DNA of 63,482 nucleotides, filler included, from Hyphochytrium catenoides (lineage: Eukaryota; Protista; Hyphochytriomycota): NCBI GenBank assembly GCA_900088475.1. It is 9 parts of 9 records of this genome, joined end to end, with 100 filler letters (N's around TTAATTAATTAA, not from the genome) between each part and the next. Parts side by side here need not be neighbours in the genome. Positions count along the whole stretch, not along the records: positions 31,102 to 38,604 come from FLMG01003533.1; 8 more parts are not named here. The stretch is one strand, 5' to 3'. The notes beneath the pieces were generated by a model that made no database searches, had not been told where the DNA came from, and was given only the letters and a program-made list of their open reading frames with translations. A program made the position numbers and the translations under genes. Of this stretch, positions 2,372 through 40,104 are shown one piece after another (positions within the stretch are counted from its first letter, which is position 1; each line of letters starts with the position of its first letter).

Positions 2372-5300
2372 ATGCTATTGTCTCCCTCTTCTCTTTCCTC
2401 CTCGCTTTGTTCCCAAGCGTCTCCTCTTTCCTCTGCGTCGTCCTCCTCTCGTCGCAACTCTCCTCTGTCGTCTGGCGCTGAAGGCAATGAAGGCCGCCTC
2501 TCTCAAGTGAAGAAGAATGCAACCCAAGAAGACAGTGCCTCTGTCAGTCTCTTCCCTTCGTCCTCGCTCTTTGCTTCCAATCAGGACTTGGACTCTTATC
2601 GAGCTATCCCCTTCACAACTGCTGGAGAAGAAGGAGAGACGGAATATGATGCCGGAAGGAGGAGAGAGACAAGAGGAGCAGACGTAGAAGACCACAGCGT
2701 CTCTACTGTCGGACCTTCTTCCTCCTCCTCTTCCCGATCAGGCGCAGTCAACATCGCTAGCCTTGGCGCTATCCCGTCGTTGAGTTCTCTGCCCCGCCAT
2801 CCTACGGCGCTGGCTTCTGAGCCCTCTGCTGAGGGAAGCAGAAAGCGAGAAAGCAGTGCAGCTTCTCAGTCGTCGTCTTCTCTCCCACATCGGAGCTCTT
2901 TCCAGAGCCAGAGAGCCGTCGCCGCTGCTCGCAGCTCTTTCCATGGATCTTTCCACGAGCATCTGCAGGACTGTGACTATCTAGGAGGATATGTCGGAGG
3001 AGATCTCTTCTATGGAACCAAGCCGTCTCCTAGTCCAACGTCCTCTCCTTTTCCTGGGCTAGAAGACGTTACCAAGCGCGTGGAGAGGAATAGTAAGAAG
3101 AAGATAGGGTTGAGAGAAGAGAGGTTCTCCAGCAACGCAGCAGAGAGAGTTCTCCTAGAGACAGGAGACGATGAAGCTCTTACGAGTCACTACTACGCAG
3201 CGGTGGAGGAGGGCAGCGCGGAGGGAAGCCCTGGAAGAGAGAGGAGTACGTCCAAGACCCTCTCGCCCACTAGCACTCTCTCTCAACTGGAAGAAGAAGA
3301 GAAGAAGATCCCGTCTGCCCATGTGTGGCACACGCTGGACCCTGAGACGGCGGCTCTTGAGCTCTCGACTGATCTGCAGACAGGCTTACCTTCGGCAGAA
3401 GTGGAGAGAAGGCAAGAAACCTACGGTCCTAATGCCTTAGAGAACGAGAAGCCTCCCGGACTGCTGACGATCTTCTTCATGCAGTTCTGCAACCTCATCA
3501 TTCTGCTCCTGGCCGCAGCTTCTGTGGCCGCCTTTGGGATTGGCCACACAGCGGAAGGGGCGGCCATTCTCTTTATTATCCTTCTCAACTGCTCCATAGC
3601 CACAGCGCAGGAGAGACACGCAGGAAACGCCCTCGCATCTCTCGCAAAGCTCTCTTCTACGCTGTGCGTAGTGCTGAGAGATGGCGTGAAGATGTCTGTG
3701 GACACTGAGAGCCTCGTGCCTGGAGATGTGGTCCTTCTAGTGGCCGGAGACATTGTCCCTGCAGATCTTTTACTCATCTCTGCTGCTGATCTGCTAGTCA
3801 ATGAGATGGTGCTGACAGGAGAGTCCACAGATGTGCGAAAGTCGACTGTCAGAAGGGACGGCAAGGGGAAGAAGAAAGCAGACAAAGACGCTTCTTCCAC
3901 AAAGCTGCTCCCGCCTAACATGTGCTTCTCTAGCACCATCGTGGCAGAGGGAAACGCCAGGGCTCTAGTGGTGGAGACCGGCATGCGCACCAAAGTCGGG
4001 AAGATTGCTGCCCTTCTCAAAGGAGAATCAAGCAGTAGCACCAGGGGAGCCCATCCTTCTTCGGAGGCAGAGAGAAAGAAGAGAAGGCACTTTCGACTGA
4101 TCCGGAACTGTTGGGCACGGTTCTTGAGGCCTTTCCAAGAGGCGAAGAAGAAGGAGACACCTCTGCAGCGCGGCCTGCACAAGCTGGGCGTTATTATCGG
4201 CGTCGGGGCAATCATTCTCGCCGTTGTTGTCTTCGTTGTGGGCCTTCTACGCGGTACTCGAGACCCTCAGAATCCTGACTCTCCCGTAGCCTTTACAATG
4301 CTCATGATCTCTGTAGCAGTGGCTGTCTCTGCCATCCCTGCAGGCCTTCCTATGGTGGTGATCATCTGTCTCACGGCGGGGACCGTGGAGATGGTCAAGA
4401 GACACGTGATTGTTAGGCGTTTGGCTGCGGTGGAAGTGTTGGGCTCTGCCAGCATTATCAACACGGACAAGACGGGGACGCTGACGCAAGGCAAGATGAC
4501 TGCGGTTAAGCTGTGGGCAGACTTTCAGGCCTTTGACGTCACCGGGAAAGGCTACACTCCTGAGGGAGACATTCTTGTCGAAGGGGAGTCGCAACTGGTG
4601 GAGGACCAAGAAGGGAAGAAGAAGCTGGGCCATCAACTGCTAGAGAGAATGTTGACAATGGCCGTGCTGTGTAGCAACACTTCCTTAGTGCGAGACAAGG
4701 AGGAGAAAGAAGAGATGCCACCATCGCGAGGAGGAGAACAGAAGGCGGCAGCAGAAGGGGCAGGAGAAGAAGAGGCAGGCGATGGCCCATGGAACTGCAT
4801 AGGAAACACAAGCGAAGCTCCTTTGATCGTCTGTGCAGCCAAGGCAGGGATCTGGTCTCGGGACGTCTCTCAACAAAATCCGCGCGTCGCTGAGATCCCC
4901 TTCTCCAGCAAACGCAAACTCATGGCCACTGTGCATTCCTTCTCCTCCCAGAAGATGACTGCTACCAACCATGACGGATCATCGGTATTGCGGCCTTTGG
5001 CATCTTCTGGAGACGAAGGAGCCAAGCTCTTGGCGGTGGTCAAAGGTGCGCCAGGCAGACTCTTAGAGAAATGCACCAGGTATCTCACCTCAGATGGACG
5101 GATTGTGCCTCTTTCTCCTTCGCACAAGGCTGAGATACTGCGGTTCATTGAAGAGATGTCCAGCGAGGCCCTCAGAGTGCTTGCTGTGGCCTTTCGGCCG
5201 CTCCACAGGCTGCCCTGGGAAAGCAAAGAGCGAGAAGACACGACGATGGCAGGAGGAGAGGAGCCACTGAGCGCCGATGACAAGGCGGATCTGATTGCTG

Positions 5301-31101: not shown

Positions 31102-32000
31102 CAACCTCTTATTCGTATGACCCCTAAATTATGAAGCAAAATTTAGGGTCCTCTTAGCCATTGATTTAATGCTGTCCAACCCATCCTATCTTCCCCCCTT
31201 GCCACACCTTTTGTAAGCGACACAAGTCAGGCATGAAAGCGTCCTTTCCAGCGGACCCAAGCGTGAAGTGGATGATGGGAGCCATTTTCAGCGGCTTTTC
31301 TGGGGAATAGTGTGCAGACTCATCTCAGCCCTGTTGACCAATCAGAGGCGTCAAACAACTGTGATTGACGTTAGCACCTGCGAAGTGACAACTTTGAATG
31401 CCGTTAGCCCCTATCTGAGGACCTGCCCAACTCCTGATTGGCTGAAGTCCCTGCAGATGGGTTCCTCTAGAAGGCGGCCGCTTGTAAGAGCTGGCCGCTG
31501 AAGCTTTGGGCAGGGTTTAGCTGAAGAGTGGCATCGGGTTGATGAGGCAGGGGACATCCGAGGAGGGGCCGTTACTGTACCACTGAAGAGTTGTATGCAT
31601 GAGCAGAACTGAAGTTCGTGAGAATGCATCATAGTCGGTCTTCCTCGTCCCTGTTTTCCCTTCTGGCTTCTAGCAAGCTTCTACGGTAAGTGGACCGCAA
31701 TTCTTTGGCAGCAGGAAGAGAGGAAAGAACATCATAGCTACTGTATAGAGACTAATCGGCGAAACAGAGCACGAGCACACGCCCATTACGTTTTCCTTCA
31801 GGAGCGAAGAGCAAAGGGATGCTATGACTTTCTATGTACGGAATACACCCCGCTATTTCTCAATATAGTTCTATTAGCACTTCTTGTCAATCTATATCTA
31901 GCGAAGAAACGTCTTTCAAATAGTAAGGGTGACCCAGAAGACGGTCTTCTTCTCATAGTCGGAGTGGTCGCTTGAATCGTGAACACTCTAGCCAGCTTAA

Positions 32001-35000
32001 TTATCTATCAAGGGCCCTTTCGATGAGTGAGATGCTCCCGTCTATGATAGATAAAGCCATCAGGTCGCGGAATGCAGAACAATCTTCTCCTCTAAAGTGT
32101 TTGACGAAGTCCTATCGTAAAGAGCAAGGACTGCGGTCAGGCACTCCTACCTAGGACGGCATGAAAGAGATCATTTCTACCACATAAATTTACCTGGGTT
32201 CGAGATGCAAAATAACAGTAGAGGCATATAAAAACCCCACAATCAAAGGAGTTGGTTTGGCGTGGGGCGCTTGGATCTGTCTGGCCGGAAAGCTTCCATC
32301 CTTCCATCAAACTCGTGTTGTGGATACCTCGTGCCATAGCCTCTTCCTTTAGGTACCGATAAAGCTTGTCAACATACTCCTGTCCGTTGCCATGAAGGGA
32401 GTCATAGTACTTGATCTCTTTTCCGTCAAAGTCCAGAAGAGCAATAGTCCAGTGGTTCCTATTGACGTTAATAGGGACAAACAACTTGGACAAACCTAAG
32501 AGGTCAACCTTGTGTCTTGAAAGCCAGTTTCTCACATAATCATAACCGTTCTTCTCGTATTGAGGGTAGAAGTGCGTAGATAGAATGACTACAGCGGTTC
32601 TCCTTTCACCCTCTGGAACATCATCTGTCAAAGACATCTCTCCCTCGAGCATTCGACAGAACACGTTGATGACCTATGAAGAGAGACGTTCATAGCGTTA
32701 AAGGTTAGGAACAGCAGGTCCCCCAAAGATTGACATTTAAGGACGCACCTCGTCATTTAGCCACTTCTTTGGTGCCAGACTTCGAAGCTTGCTAAGAGCC
32801 ACCTCGTAGGGACCAACAGTAGCCGTCGGGTCACTTGAAGATAGAAGAACATCCGCGGCACGCCTCTTCTGCTGGTCTGTTAATCTAAATTGAGAGATAG
32901 TGGCAGAGGGTGCATCTTTTCGTCTTCTTTTCGTTTGAACACCTTTGCAGGAGGGAGAGGGCGGTGGCAAGCAGGATCGTAACGCTCCTCTAGTTACATC
33001 AAGAATGGCAAATGGAAGCGTACCTGAGCTGCTTTCAAAGTAGTTCTGACAACGAGGACAGGTACAAATACCATCTCGCCCCCTTGCACGCTTCGCAGTG
33101 CTGCTCAGAGAGTGCCAGCCATCTCGGACGGCCTTACAGGTACATCCTTTGCCATACAAGTGATACTCACGGAAAGCAGCTCTAAGATGACCACAATGCT
33201 TGCATGTTTGCAGGCTTTTGTCCTTCCGGCCCGGAGACAACTTTTCCACTACTTTCGCTTTGCCATTGATTGGTATGCCCTTTACGGAGCCAATAAAGGA
33301 CGGCATAGACAACCTCATACTTTCTCGGAGTGTGGCGCTCTCTGTTTTACTCAGAGCTGGCACTTCTTGACGCAAGTGGGTCTCCTTTCCAGAAGGAAAA
33401 GATGACCGCCCCGATGACGCAACCTTGAAGGAAAGTGTTTGAGGTCGCCTTAGCGTTTGACGAAGTTCCCGGTTCTCGTCATCCTTTGTTGACTGCCCTT
33501 CAGACGGTTGAGACATGGTTGCGGCCATATTCTCAGCGTCCAAGAAGACCTCATGATACTCCTTCAGATGCTTCTCCGTCTTCCTTGTTACTTGGCCCGA
33601 AAGCTCCTCTGCTGAGTTCCAAAAGGCAGCAAAAGCAGCAAAATCCATGTAATTCTTACACTTAGTACCGTGGCTTACAAAGAACTGCCTCCATATTGAG
33701 CGGTAGACTAGCTTATCTTCAGGGGTGAAGATGCGAGAGGCAAAGCTATCCTTCATCCTCTTCACAATCCATCTGGACGACGCACTAGACTTTCTAAAGG
33801 CAGGAGCAGCGTTCCTCGGCCATTCGGGAGTAGAGCCTGCACCAGCTGCGCTAGATCCACTTTTGTCATCAACCACTGGCGGGCATACATAATGTAGACC
33901 TGGAGGAGCAGGGCATGCAGAGGGGAGAGGGTACAAACGTGTTAACTCCAAAAGCAGTCTGTGATGAGTACGCATTTCGCACCAAAACTCTCATTGGTGT
34001 CCTTGAAGTGCCGCGTCGAGAGCCATTCTGGATACGGTATATTGGCTGATTCAGGAGCGAAGATGTCCAAAGCAATTTCTTGGATATCCTCTATTAAAAA
34101 CTGGTCTGTGAAGCCTGCAAGCTCTTCATCTAGTCCACAGTGCTTCTCGGCCATCCTGACGATGTGAGAGACGAGATAAGAGCTCCAGGTCCTCTGTACC
34201 AGAGTGGGGGGATGACGCCACAGGACTCCTACCTAAGGTTCCATCTGAAGCAGAATTCCTTCAAAATGAGGATCGCCAACCTATGAGAACTTGATCCAAC
34301 AGCAAGAAGGTTTCTTATGTGGCGATGAAAGCCTTCTGAAGAGGCGAGTATTTAGTGATGTGACTACTGACGTGCAATTAGGGTCTGTGGCTAACAAGCG
34401 TCCTACCGAGATCTGATGTCCCACGAATGCAGCTGAGTGGCCTAGTCTCCCCTGGGAAGAATGGACATCAATGTGATTAATTTGCTATGGCAGCCTTTGA
34501 AGAAGTAAGGAAAGGACCTGCCTCCGAGCAGGTATACCTGAATACTCTTTTTCGTCTCTATCTATATACAAAGAGATGGTAGGGTGATCTGAGAGACAGC
34601 CCTTTGTGACATGGCCCATCAATAGATGCCACTGTTTCTCCGCCTCAGCACTGAAGAGTTTACCCTTTGTCCTGTGATCTGTTATATCGTTGTAGACCTC
34701 ATAGAGCCGCTGAAGACGTGCATACAGCTCCTTTGGCGGGGGTATTCGGCGTCTAACTCTTGCAAGAACGAAATCATAGTCTTGGGCAAACTTCTTCTCA
34801 ACTTCATCAATACTCATTCCTTCTGCAGAGGGCGAAAGAAAAGCAATTAAACAATGGAAGAGGTGGTGAGGCCCATGACAAGGGAGAGCGTTCAAAGGAA
34901 TGCTCTTATCGAAGAGAGTGTTGAAGCTAGAAAGACAGAGAGCCAGGCACACATACAGTGACTAGAGTATAGACCGACTAGTAAATACGCCACCGACAGA

Positions 35001-38000
35001 AACAGTTTGACGCAGACAAAGGGAGCTCTCATCGCACGAGCAAAATGAGAGGGCATCGGATTGTTGTCAAGCAGCTATTCAATCAAAGTTGAACGCAGAA
35101 CTTCTTCTTGATTCCTCAGACCTTTCAGTAGCTTTTGCCTAAGAGCAATCACATCCTCCTTGTTAACAACAAAAAAAGCATCCTGCAGCCTTCGGCAGAA
35201 CATTTTGAACGCCCCGTGCTTTTTACTGAGAGCCCTTGTTATGCGCATCATCGCGTGCAAGGCGTCCAACTTAATCTGGGTGACGTATACCGAGCAAGTT
35301 AGTGAAAATTAGATTCACCAGGTGGCGTGCAAGGTAGCTCATAGACTGGACACTACCTTCACTTTCAACCATTCTTCTTCGTCTGCAGAGGCAGCACCAG
35401 GGCCTAAATTTATAGGGACATCTTCTGCGTCTGCTCCGTCACCATCCGCTGCACCGGTAGGACCAATGAACCCCTTTCTCCCTTTACTTTTAAGAGGGAA
35501 TAACCCAACACCTTCGCATAATCCCGGTGATCCACCAGTGGAAGCACCATTATTCTCCCCAAAGCGACAACATAGACATTGTTGCAGGTCAAATGTTGCA
35601 TCATCTTCATCCTCTTCATCATCAATCTCCAGGTCGTTTGGGTCCAGTGTCCCGGCAGTTTCATAAAGTTCTCGAAATGTCCTGTCATCACTGGTGTCGA
35701 ATTCCTCAGAAGTACCGGCATAATCCTCAGGCTGGTGTTTACCTTGGTTAGTGGTAACTTGCGGCTCTTCCTGCCCTTCGCCAGGGGGCACAATTCGTAG
35801 ACAACGAATAGGCCAAACCACAGAGCTGTTCACCGCCATCTCCATCGATATTCCTTGGAGGCCTTGAGTGGCTTCTTCAACGTACAAGGGAAGGATGCTG
35901 CCAGACAGATACGCTTTGGCAATCCTCACAACGACACGCTTCTTATTAACGACGATAGTTCTCCCGAAGACTGTATGCTGCTTTCTAGTCTCAGACCGCC
36001 GCCGACCGGCTTGCTGTTCACACACCTGGACCAGCTGAGCTTGACCAATGACTTTCCTCTCGTTTTTCGACAAGAGGTTCACCTTGATGCCCGGTCGTAG
36101 TTCCGCAGCTGACGGTCTAGCCTGTTCATGGGTAGCCCTTGTAAGAATAAGCTTCTCGTAGATTTCCAGCGACACTGCAGCATCCTTTGCTGCATAGAGC
36201 ATTTGCTTCTCATTTAGCTCTCTAGCCTCCCAATCGGAAAGTCTTACGTTCTCGGACTTGTCTAGCCACGCTCCATTGAGAAATACCTCGCATAGCACCC
36301 GCAATGAGCTCTTTCTGTGGTTTAGGAAGCCTTTCTGCGCCGCCAGCTCTGCCAGCTCTATGGAGCCATGGATTGTAACACCAAAATCCTCCGTCATTTT
36401 CTTAGCATCTTGTCCCACGCAGCGGCCAGCCTTTTTGATGGACCCATCCCGAAATATTTGGCCCAGCTTGTAAGGCAATCGCCTTTTCAAGCTACCCTCC
36501 TTGTCAAAAAGTTTACGGGTACGGAAAAGGTAGATGCGAAGCTGACCGGTCTGTCTGCTTCTATAGGCCACCTGAACCAGGGATATCTTTCCTCTATGGC
36601 CCCCACCGTTAACAACCCATTCAATGTCAAACCCAATTTCCTTTACGCCTTCGTTGAGAAGCTTCTCACAGAGATGATTCGCAGCAGCATCACTAGTCTC
36701 AGTTCCGTCCAGATCTATCATCTGGATCTGTTCTGCAGAGAGCTGGTATGGCTTTCCTGAGGGCACCTGTCTGGTATTGGTAGAAGAATCTCCTCCTGAT
36801 GATAACGATTCAAAATGGCGAGAGAAGACATCAAACAGCTGGCAACAATTATCAACGTAGCATACTTCCGGCTTCTCGAAGCCGTTAAGTTCGCAGCGGT
36901 TCTTGATGCCTTCGAGAAGCTTTCCAATCTCCTCGCCTGATTCAGACTCCAGGAAGGTGAACCCAGCTACCTGATGATACTGATTGAGCACAGTGTAGAG
37001 TAAAGAGTGAGGATTCTCGCCCCCGACTTGAACCCTCTTCGCAATCTTATAACTCCCATCGGCTTTGATAACCTGTAGACCGCTGACCATCTGCATCCTT
37101 CTATCAAGCCACTTCTCTCTTCTCTCAAGTGCCTCAATAAGAATAGACATAAGGTATGTCTCTGAAGGGATGCTACCACCGTATTCTTTGCTAAAGAAGA
37201 GGGGAAAGTCGTTAGGGTTCTGCAAGAGATCCCGAATCTCGTCGGGAGAACTACGAAGCAATTGAGAAAGAGTCGGCTGATACCCAGTTTCCTTTTGGAC
37301 TGCCATGGATGATCTGCCTACAGCTGATATGTAGGCTCGGAATAGCCGGGCGTGCGTTTGCAGGTAATTGTCCTTAATGAAGGCATGGAAAGAGGAGACA
37401 CTGAGTCCGGGAGAGAAGGTCACTAGCTTCCTTAGGGTCTCGCAAAGCTCTATACTGACTGCACCTTTGTGGGTTATAACGCAGGGGAAATCATCCGCGA
37501 TATCAGGAGCCATCATGTCAATCACTTCTCTGGCGTAGCCGTTATACGATTTCTTACAATCGCCGCATCGATAGCGTTTACAGATGATGAAGAAAATGTC
37601 ATTAAGCCCATACACCTGACGTGGTCCATGGGGGTTGAAGCCTTCACTCTTAACATTGTCAGCCTTCTTACACCAAGGACATGGAAGAACACCGAAAGGG
37701 TAGACCTGCTGCTGGACATACTCAGGGACCCATACAAAAAGCTTCTTAAGGCATCGCTCCATAGGGCGGAGCGACCTGCCATCATCGCCGGGCTCAGGAA
37801 AGTTGACATTGCGAGGTCTCACCCAATAGCTACCTTTATGCGGCCAGGTTCCTTGTACTCGGATACTGTTCCGCCTTGGACCCTTAACAAGCCGAATAGA
37901 TTCCTTGATGGTGGTCACGGCGTCCTGCATCCAGATTTTCTGAAAGGATGGGATAGCTGCTTCCTCCTCGGCCCTGGGATCATCCTCTAGAAAAACGCTG

Positions 38001-38437
38001 GGTTCCTCAACTTGCTCTTCAATTGGGAATACTGGCTCCTCCTTCTTCGCCTTCTTCGAGCCCACCACCTTGGCGGTGGCATTCTTGGGTGCTAAGTAAT
38101 CGCTACCAGCATCATCATCCGGAGGCGTTGGACTCGCTGCTAGTGTTGTTGGGCCTGCGTGCAACTCAGCAGCCTCCCTACCAGAGAAAAGAGAGCGATT
38201 TGCTGCGTCGCCAACAGCACCACCATTACTAGTAAAAGCCTTCTCTACCGCCTCTACCGCTGCCTCCAATCTACGCTTTTTTGCCACCTGATACTCCACT
38301 CTCTTGCTCTTCTGCTTGTTCGACAAATTTTCTTCAGCAGGATCTCTCCAGGGACAAGTGGACCTGTAATGCTGGGGGCCCGGTGCTCGGTTCTTGCACA
38401 AGCTGCAAGTTCCTCCGCTTCCCTTAGCACGTCCCAT
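32001..38437 (-). mobile_element. Intron-containing DNA-transposon polyprotein: Zn knuckle + DUF6729-like region + Mutator/ISL3-like DDE transposase with embedded DEDDy 3'-5' exonuclease + Ulp1/C48 protease
   Basis: Eight exons splice in frame at GT-AG. Motifs in order: CSLC..H..TC; CPWC..GPRQVYGL..YRCGDC; KADGSYK (D1); YVDNCC (D2); GFDIEW / VGQDAK / YAAKDA (ExoI-III); KLDALHAMMR; GCLSD; RGTSDL|EGFH (E); RWN; WLNDE|VIN; NHW, YYDSL, QTNSFDCGVF (C48 catalytic residues). Confidence 0.88.
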
Positions 38438-40104
38438 AGTCCTATGTGGTGATGGAAAGCAAGATGACGATAAAACTAGTGACGATGCCGCTCGCTGGTC
38501 CCGGTCCTGCTGCTTGATAAGCTAGTACGTACTTATCAGCAGTGTAATGTAATGTGTGTTTGACCAATTTGTGCTGCTTCTGTCTGCTTGCTGGAAATAT
38601 TGTCNNNNNNNNNNNNNNNNNNNNNNNNNNNNNNNNNNNNNNNNNNNNTTAATTAATTAANNNNNNNNNNNNNNNNNNNNNNNNNNNNNNNNNNNNNNNN
38701 NNNNATTAGTTAGGACTCCCCCGAACAAACGGAAACAGTGGTCCTTACTTCTACGTGTCGACCGTATTGCTTTTTGCTGATGTTGCATTCTACGGCCACT
38801 ACTGCTGCTGTGTTGTCACGCTGTAAACCTAGTTTAGCTTAAGTTTTTCTTGATCTTTGGGGAACAGCAAGTCACGTCTGTTTTCCCGAGGTTTAAGCCT
38901 CTGTGAGTTGCTGAATAAAATATACCTATCGAAGCGAACTTGGACGAGTCCCTCAGATGGCGATGGGTGCCTCTTCATTATATCTTGAAAGCCTTCCCTT
39001 GAGCCTTCTGTTGGCTGCTGTTGGTAATAGAGACGAGCGGCACAATTGTCCACCTATCAAGCTTCTTGAGCGAACGTGCCGCCATCTCTGTGAGCCATCT
39101 AAACCTCAAACATGGAGCAGTACAGCTGTGAAGAGTCCTATAATGGCAGCTGTGACCCATACCATCGTGTCTCTGAATTTCTCACCAGAACCATTGACCA
39201 ATATTACACCTAAGGCTTTGGAATACGTGCCTTCCTATACATTGAGGAGTGTGGCTCATGGGGCGGAGATTGATGGTGCAGGACAGACAGCTTTCGGCAA
39301 CTTTAACCTGGCGCCAAACGAACACATTATAATGGAGGGCCAATGGAGGAGTTTATCCGCGCTTGAAGTCTGTGAGACTTTGGATTGATTGACCTAAGCC
39401 GCGCTAAGCTCTGCGGAGCAGGAAATGGCTTGGGTGCTTGATCTCAAGTTATACCGGGCGGCAGGACTACGTCAACAGAGCTCTATTTTGTTCGATCTAA
39501 CAAATGTACCATCAGGGCCCTTCCTCATCACGACACATAGGGTTTCGTCGACACTCCGGCGCCAATTCTGAGAGCCAAGAGCAGCCCTCCAGCTCTTTCT
39601 AAAAGGCACGGTCAAGCTTTGGTAGTAAGGCAGAGAAGCCGCCGCCCACCACTCTTGCGAGAGCATACAGTGCAAGAAATAGCTTCTGCGCTTTGAGGAC
39701 TTTCGTAGCCAAAGGAAGAAGGACGTACGGTTCTGACAAAGAGGCTGGCTGTAAAAGAAATCTTGTCGATTGAGGACATCGAGAAGACAGGTTCTAGACG
39801 AGTTCCATTCAGCCTCATTGAGGACTTGCTTGAAGATCGAAGGGTCCCAAGTACTAGGAGTCGGGCCTCTCATAGGGTGAAACAGATCTAGCAATCATCT
39901 TGTGAACCAGGTAGACAATAAATAGAATAAGATAGAGGAGCAAGCTCTGGAGCTCGCCCTCTGATATGAGTAATCCAGTCCATTGGCCTGAATTAGGTTT
40001 TGGATGTTGTCGAGTGGATTCTGAATAGGAGGAGGTGTACTGTAGAGAGAAGAGAAAAGAGAAGGAAGGAGAGAGGAGAAGAGGATACTATCCTCTTCTC
40101 CTCT

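Follow-up and report, generated by a model that had tools for sequence, protein, structure and literature searches.

Dada, a superfamily of DNA transposons, was described by Kojima and Jurka in 2013 (PMC3706591). Its transposase has a DDE triad and, following the second D, a DxxH motif, and is distantly similar to those of MuDR, hAT, P, Kolobok and IS256; zinc fingers, CCCC at the N-terminus and CCHC at the C-terminus, are also present (PMC3706591). In the Dada elements of Laccaria and Ectocarpus, a DEDDy exonuclease is placed after the second D and before DxxH, and introns occur in all Dada families except the Perkinsus ones (PMC3706591). The criteria given for the superfamily are a target site duplication (TSD) of 6–7 bp and insertion into genes for transfer RNA (tRNA) or for small nuclear RNA (snRNA), the Dada-1/Dada-2 families being without a defined target (PMC3706591). 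The animal and Perkinsus elements have been described with 6–7 bp TSDs, no terminal inverted repeats (TIRs) and RNA-gene targeting. Here we report on a gene found in a window of 63,482 nucleotides joined from nine records of the Hyphochytrium catenoides genome. The piece at positions 31102–38604 (FLMG01003533.1) has one large gene on its minus strand, and we conclude with high confidence that it carries the structurally intact gene of an autonomous Dada-superfamily transposon, to which a Ulp1/SENP deSUMOylase has been fused C-terminally in this lineage.

Comparison with published Dada transposases

The window protein matched the published rows of Dada-1_ES, Dada-1_LB and Dada-2_LB (Dataset S1, PMC3706591) in every conserved block, in a comparison in which word mismatches were counted. 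The paired motifs (window / Dada) were KLDALHAMMRI / VRLDIFHALQRI, KKHGAFKMF / KSHGAFKPF, GCLSDHPTISLY / DCLSDPHGVPLYY, IRGTSDLEGFHRHIRN / VRGTNYTE..GYHRYLRR, FRWNLRMA / YRWNIRMA, SRHFESL / ERHFPSL and YAAKDAAVSLEIYEKL / YAALDAWASLKIYEKL. A representative of the wider protein family, P0033, had six exact words in common with Dada-1_LB, and exon 1 of the window gene matched P0033 at E 6e-30. Similarity to the published Dada transposases was judged by this block and word comparison with the Dataset S1 rows.

Dada-1_ES of Ectocarpus and Dada-1_LB and Dada-2_LB of Laccaria share with the window protein the order CCCC finger, D, D, DEDDy exonuclease, DxxH, E, C-terminal region and, putatively, CCHC finger, and in all of them the gene contains introns. 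The window protein differs from the three in a long acidic linker after the exonuclease and in an extra C-terminal Ulp1 domain (Peptidase_C48) of about 220 aa. The initial annotation had proposed the gene as a candidate for an undescribed system, from an unclassified lineage. This did not hold, since the match to Dada, published in 2013, extends block by block, and the architecture of the DDE–exonuclease part belongs to a family already named. What the description of that family does not include is the Ulp1 tail: a motif search of Dataset S1 for the Ulp1 hallmark motifs found them in none of the 36 published Dada proteins.

Gene structure and predicted domains

In a scripted splice model, the gene runs on the minus strand from 38437 to 32001, and its 10 exons join into a single frame of 1,833 aa whose only stop is the terminal one. 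All nine introns are bounded by GT..AG, eight of them being 71–86 nt long and one 299 nt. The exons are at 38437–35357, 35275–35122, 34822–34538, 34451–34407, 34335–34233, 34155–33983, 33899–33024, 32942–32749, 32673–32194 and 32111–32001. The open reading frames (ORFs) behind the model, all on the minus strand, are at 35339–38437 (1032 aa), 35075–35269, 34485–34952, 33942–34154, 32737–33975 and 32137–32664, those downstream of the 1,032-aa ORF being smaller and in changing frames. Candidate intron 7 (33023–32943, 81 nt) is in-frame and stop-free with GT..AG ends and a pyrimidine tract; if it is retained, the product has 1,860 aa. This stretch was not conserved in L001, one of four contigs from other samples (L001–L004) that encode relatives with 33–44% identity in exon 1. 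An uninterrupted frame of 1,850–1,900 aa spliced at GT–AG sites had been proposed in the initial annotation, and our rebuilt model agrees with it apart from the slightly shorter length of the fully spliced form.

When the spliced model was searched by tblastn against L001–L004, the breaks and frame changes of the matches coincided with the exon junctions of the window gene. The breaks at 1027/1028 and at about 1080 were found in all four contigs, the one at 1178–1189 in L002 and the one at 1637/1638 in L001. The splice model, and with it the whole Dada-type coding region at 32001–38437, is supported because four relatives with such low identity shift frame at matching points of the protein. 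The start codon agrees with the N-termini of the relatives P0002 and P0003. The first 30 aa (38350–38437) contain a zinc-knuckle-like C-x2-C-x8-H-x4-C motif, CSLCKNRAPGPQHYRSTC, common to P0002–P0004 and absent from more distant relatives.

Exon 1 (35357–38437, aa 1–1027) encodes a lineage-specific N-terminus, the DUF6729/CCCC finger, the first two catalytic aspartates, the exonuclease and the lineage-specific acidic linker. Pfam placed DUF6729 at aa 231–380 (37298–37747, E 1.9e-11). This region contains C253-x2-C256 and, 35 residues on, C291-x2-C294; the four cysteines are kept in two alignments of relatives (A2 and A3), and their spacing resembles that of C389/C394/C429/C432 in Dada-U6_DR. 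The pattern also agrees with the Dada-1_LB row. Judged from these sequence comparisons, Pfam DUF6729 corresponds to the N-terminal zinc-finger region of Dada, which is apparently a new practical point; our literature search found DUF6729 mentioned in no paper.

The N-terminal half of the putative RNase H-like DDE core (36758–37120) contains D460 (KADGSYK) and D529 (YVDNCC), and this region aligns with ‘IDHSHKI’ and ‘FTDN...RHFPSL’ of Dada-1_LB. Its C-terminal half lies in exons 2–6 and the start of exon 7 (33871–35275), where the block alignment with Dada-1_ES located the DxxH motif (D1031/H1034, 35255–35266) and E1189; this half gave 74 phmmer matches among the relatives (best E 1.2e-58). In alignment A1 of 59 relatives, the column of the first catalytic D (D60) is near-invariant, that of the second (D138) is invariant, as are D553 and H556 of DxxH, and E710 is near-invariant. 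Intron 4 (phase 1) interrupts the codon of E1189 (base 34407 plus 34335–34334), an intron position found also in L002, and therefore the DDE active site is present only in the spliced product.

A DEDDy 3′–5′ exonuclease (36149–36694) was identified by Pfam as DNA_pol_A_exo1 at aa 582–763 (E 1.5e-16), between D529 and D1031. Its alignments, to EXD2 at E 4.5e-18 and to WRN at E 1.8e-12, bring D604/E606, D677 and Y748/D752 into register. The fold and DEDDy residues are the same as in WRN and EXD2, but those exonucleases are helicase-attached or stand alone, whereas this one is inserted in the catalytic domain of a transposase. After the DDE core comes the Dada C-terminal conserved region (33025–33870), assigned by homology to L001 and by its resemblance to the C-terminal blocks of Dada-1_LB. 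It includes a putative CCHC-type finger (CKHCGH at aa 1513) whose C..CGH...H...C pattern is kept in L001; its spacing is not identical to that of the Dada-U6_DR finger.

The Ulp1/SENP-type SUMO protease domain (32004–32817) is encoded by the last part of exon 8 together with exons 9 and 10. Pfam matched Peptidase_C48 in the last large ORF (E 5.4e-16), and in alignments of the domain to SENP1 (E 1.7e-19) and to yeast Ulp1, the residues H1711, D1728, Q1776 and C1782 are in register. All three catalytic residue sets are intact. The arrangement read in the initial annotation, a single large transposase gene whose DDE core has an exonuclease inserted after the second D and before the E, with a C-terminal Ulp1 domain and three intact catalytic sets, was confirmed by Pfam and by the residues located. 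The word ‘polyprotein’ used there is a misnomer, as nothing suggests cleavage of the product into parts.

The fold of the core was predicted with an intronless relative, P0032, whose residues 360–1175 were modelled with the alignment of 59 relatives (mean predicted local distance difference test score, pLDDT, 82.5; predicted template modelling score, pTM, 0.78) and are 27–38% identical to the window core. In searches with Foldseek and a wide structural search, the inserted domain of this model matched the WRN exonuclease (Z 25.1, root mean square deviation, rmsd, 1.7, 180 residues). The IS256-family transposase ISCth4 (6xg8_A) was matched over 246 residues (Z 12.9, rmsd 4.1), all other entries in the top 50 being exonucleases. 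This alignment spans model residues 15–751, covering the parts that flank the exonuclease on both sides, and therefore shows the exonuclease of the model to lie within a transposase domain of the RNase H type. IS256 is among the C/DxxH groups named as distant relatives of Dada, and the structural match of the model agrees with the published placement. ISCth4 is prokaryotic, it differs from the window family in having no nested exonuclease, Ulp1 or DUF6729, and the sequence similarity was not detectable by phmmer or Pfam. The domains that had been expected beforehand were thus found in part in the window protein, DNA_pol_A_exo1 and Peptidase_C48 by Pfam, while the RNase H-fold core was seen only via the model of P0032.

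The window's own DUF6729 region (37058–37930, aa 170–460) gave a confident model (pLDDT 88.7, pTM 0.85). Against 48,161 solved chains, the best Z was 4.1, in weak helix-turn-helix-like rows, and the model had no solved counterpart.

The Ulp1 domain and its possible role

The first Ulp1 motif (KKWLNDE) lies in the stop-free ORF 32737–33975, which also holds the Dada C-terminal region and the CCHC finger, and the link between them is therefore independent of any splice. Once WLNDE is spliced to VINVF, the canonical Ulp1 motif is complete again. L001, which comes from another organism, has the same order and the same junction; its middle region is 28% identical to that of the window protein (E 2e-29), and its protease is 33% identical with the catalytic residues retained. 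Such high divergence with a kept architecture argues for long-term selection on the fusion.

In Dada, a C-terminal Ulp1 domain appears not to have been described before. Neither the Dada papers nor a text search combining Dada and Ulp1 turned up a fusion of this kind, and Pfam found no Peptidase_C48 in six long relatives outside the clade of the window protein and L001. The 412-aa middle ORF and the C48 ORF had no match in a search of 5.8 billion proteins, and a metagenome-contig scan with alignment A2 recovered no further relatives with the tail. Ulp1-carrying transposons of other kinds are known, including Ginger1 (PMC2836005) and the NeSL/Utopia retrotransposons (PMC4640811). In these, and in Zisupton and the Mutator-like elements (MULEs) of plants and animals, Ulp1/SENP is fused or co-encoded, usually C-terminally, as in the window gene; but they belong to other superfamilies (integrase-like, MuDR, reverse transcriptase). 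The window C48 domain is not a recent copy from any of them, because it has no close relative in the search of 5.8 billion proteins. Dada would thus join the transposon superfamilies that have independently acquired Ulp1, which strengthens the case that SUMO removal aids transposition.

On our reading, the protein is an RNase H-fold DDE transposase of the C/DxxH group (IS256, MuDR, hAT, P, Kolobok, Dada). Binding of the element ends or of the target is presumably the task of the CCCC region (DUF6729) and of the CCHC finger near the C-terminus, and D460, D529 and E1189 would cut and join DNA. The WRN/EXD2-like exonuclease probably trims 3′ ends exposed during excision or integration, as the published interpretation has it. 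By analogy with proposals for other Ulp1-bearing transposons, the deSUMOylase may act on SUMO-modified repair or chromatin factors. The idea that it counters host silencing, which was put forward in the initial annotation, is speculation. No new kind of system is seen here, but an apparently intact three-enzyme transposase, each activity of which is separately testable.

Copies, mobility and relatives

Contigs of three DNA runs were compared with the window over 31102–37101. From about 32013 onward, the gene body was covered by one contig per run, without differences in the three runs and at a depth similar to that of the flanking contigs. The region 31138–32506, the 3′ 1.4 kb made up of the last protease exons and non-coding flank, was also covered by several short contigs with 86–93% identity in all three runs, with up to 3–4 variant contigs at some positions. 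Most loose ends of these diverged contigs were more diverged continuations of the same sequence and not junctions. The 3′ non-coding flank itself is about 900 nt long (31102–32000, minus strand) and is repeated, with the last 500 coding nt, as diverged partial copies in the same genome. The genome therefore has diverged relatives or relics of the element, while the full gene could be detected in a single version only, and the diverged partial 3′ copies indicate transposon-like behaviour. The long contigs of runs X1 and X3 end near 37745–37754, at the start of the DUF6729 region.

No significant inverted repeat was found between the two flanks (best local score 18, shuffled mean 18.5). This is uninformative, because Dada elements have been reported without TIRs. 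Copy number, TIRs and TSDs had been named in the initial annotation as points to check; the copies seen are diverged partial ones of the 3′ 1.4 kb, the full gene has a single version, and neither a TIR between the flanks nor a TSD is visible in the piece.

Signs of recent mobility were observed in a relative. The exonuclease-bearing, intronless P0032 (1,516 aa) is encoded as an identical protein on several marine metagenome contigs, in a unit of 5,040 bp (L005:1180–6219; also L006–L012). The units are 99.98–100% identical between contigs with different flanks. Both termini start with GGCA, and the two together make up an inverted repeat, imperfect and about 20 bp long; two clean insertions carry 8-bp TSDs, CGCTTCTT and GCGAGGGG (L005, L009). 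Because near-identical units stand at different sites with TSDs, exonuclease-bearing Dada relatives are recently mobile. The unit differs from canonical Dada in the TSD of 8 bp rather than 6–7 bp, in having short TIRs rather than none, and in its target, as no tRNA or snRNA gene is near it in the marine contigs, where canonical Dada targets RNA genes. A search for tRNA genes and Rfam families in L001–L012 gave none.

Some of our results weigh against the reading of the window gene as an autonomous Dada element with a fused Ulp1 domain. No public RNA run contained the window sequence, which was present in three DNA runs of one study only, so that the transcript is a model. The predicted structure of the DDE core is that of P0032, a relative with 27–38% identity. 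The combination of Dada and Ulp1 may already be catalogued in Repbase or Dfam. The full-length body is a single sequence with flank-like depth, so there may be only one full copy. No tRNA gene or Rfam family, including snRNA genes, was found in 31102–38604, and the element ends, TSD and target are probably outside this 7.5-kb piece, because the contig of one run extends about 570 nt past 38604.

Two ways of reading the gene differently we consider very improbable. The gene might belong to another or a new superfamily (KDZ/Zisupton, Mutator-like or unclassified) and merely resemble Dada, given that Zisupton and some MULEs also carry Ulp1 and that P0032, with its short TIRs, 8-bp TSD and no small-RNA-gene target, is unlike the animal and Perkinsus Dada as described. 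Yet no KDZ (PF18758) or CxC match and no MULE or Transposase_mut match was found by Pfam at E≤0.01 in any exon, nor in six long relatives, while every conserved block fits the published alignment, including rows classed as Dada by its authors; this alternative is therefore very unlikely. The only relationship to MULEs that applies is the distant one within the C/DxxH group, as seen in the modelled match to ISCth4. Still slightly less credible is that the Ulp1 exons are a separate neighbouring gene and that the giant protein arose artificially when ORFs were joined. Many eukaryotes have Ulp1 genes, and no public RNA run contained the window sequence, but the occurrence of KKWLNDE in one stop-free ORF with the Dada C-terminal region and CCHC finger requires no splice, the order and junction recur in another organism, and the splice from WLNDE to VINVF yields a canonical Ulp1 motif.

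Domestication deserves more weight, although we still consider it unlikely. Under it, the gene would be a Dada-derived host gene that is no longer mobile and has kept its catalytic domains for a host function. A domesticated Dada, dDada, is on record in cypriniform fish (PMC8869645), and the single variant-free gene body, the fully intact 10-exon frame, the intron positions shared with relatives of only 33–44% identity and the missing termini and TSD would all suit such a gene. However, Dada elements normally contain introns, and all residues for transposition are intact. The repetition of the 3′ flank and last exons in diverged copies fits a decaying repeat family, and the piece, as a short contig, breaks off within a repeat. 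We therefore prefer the autonomous Dada element, the activity of which is plausible but unproven.

An exhaustive search of representative proteins gave 2,151 relatives, 419 of them at E≤1e-10 and many of 1,200–1,900 aa. When the model was searched in pieces, DUF6729, the exonuclease and the D-D and E regions proved to be conserved together across the family; the N-terminal 220 aa, the post-exonuclease linker, the middle region and the protease were specific to the lineage. Family members were found in Basidiomycota (Ephemerocybe, Termitomyces, Rhodotorula), Mucoromycota (Phascolomyces), chytrids (Podochytrium, Blyttiomyces), the aphelid Paraphelidium and marine metagenomes. The link between DUF6729 and exonuclease domains in fungal proteins, which the initial annotation had given as background, is confirmed by this search. 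The name Dada is now available for many hypothetical proteins of fungi, aphelids and marine eukaryotes listed as ‘DUF6729 / 3′-5′ exonuclease’. Tentatively, and with somewhat less than even confidence, the window gene and L001 may represent an old, unreported Dada clade with a fixed deSUMOylase, and the exonuclease-bearing DUF6729 branch, which would differ from canonical Dada in the way the marine relative does, could merit a separate group. If this is true, Pfam DUF6729 could be annotated as the Dada N-terminal zinc-finger domain, a fold without a solved counterpart.

Among the relatives, P0040 of Paraphelidium tribonemae (EukProt) comes from a transcriptome assembly, which shows that an aphelid transcribes at least one Dada relative with the exonuclease. 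P0005 of Podochytrium sp. JEL0797 (3,352 aa) contains three successive D-D/exonuclease/E cores, at about 497–1134, 1608–2229 and 2703–3267, and is probably three tandem Dada elements merged in one gene model.

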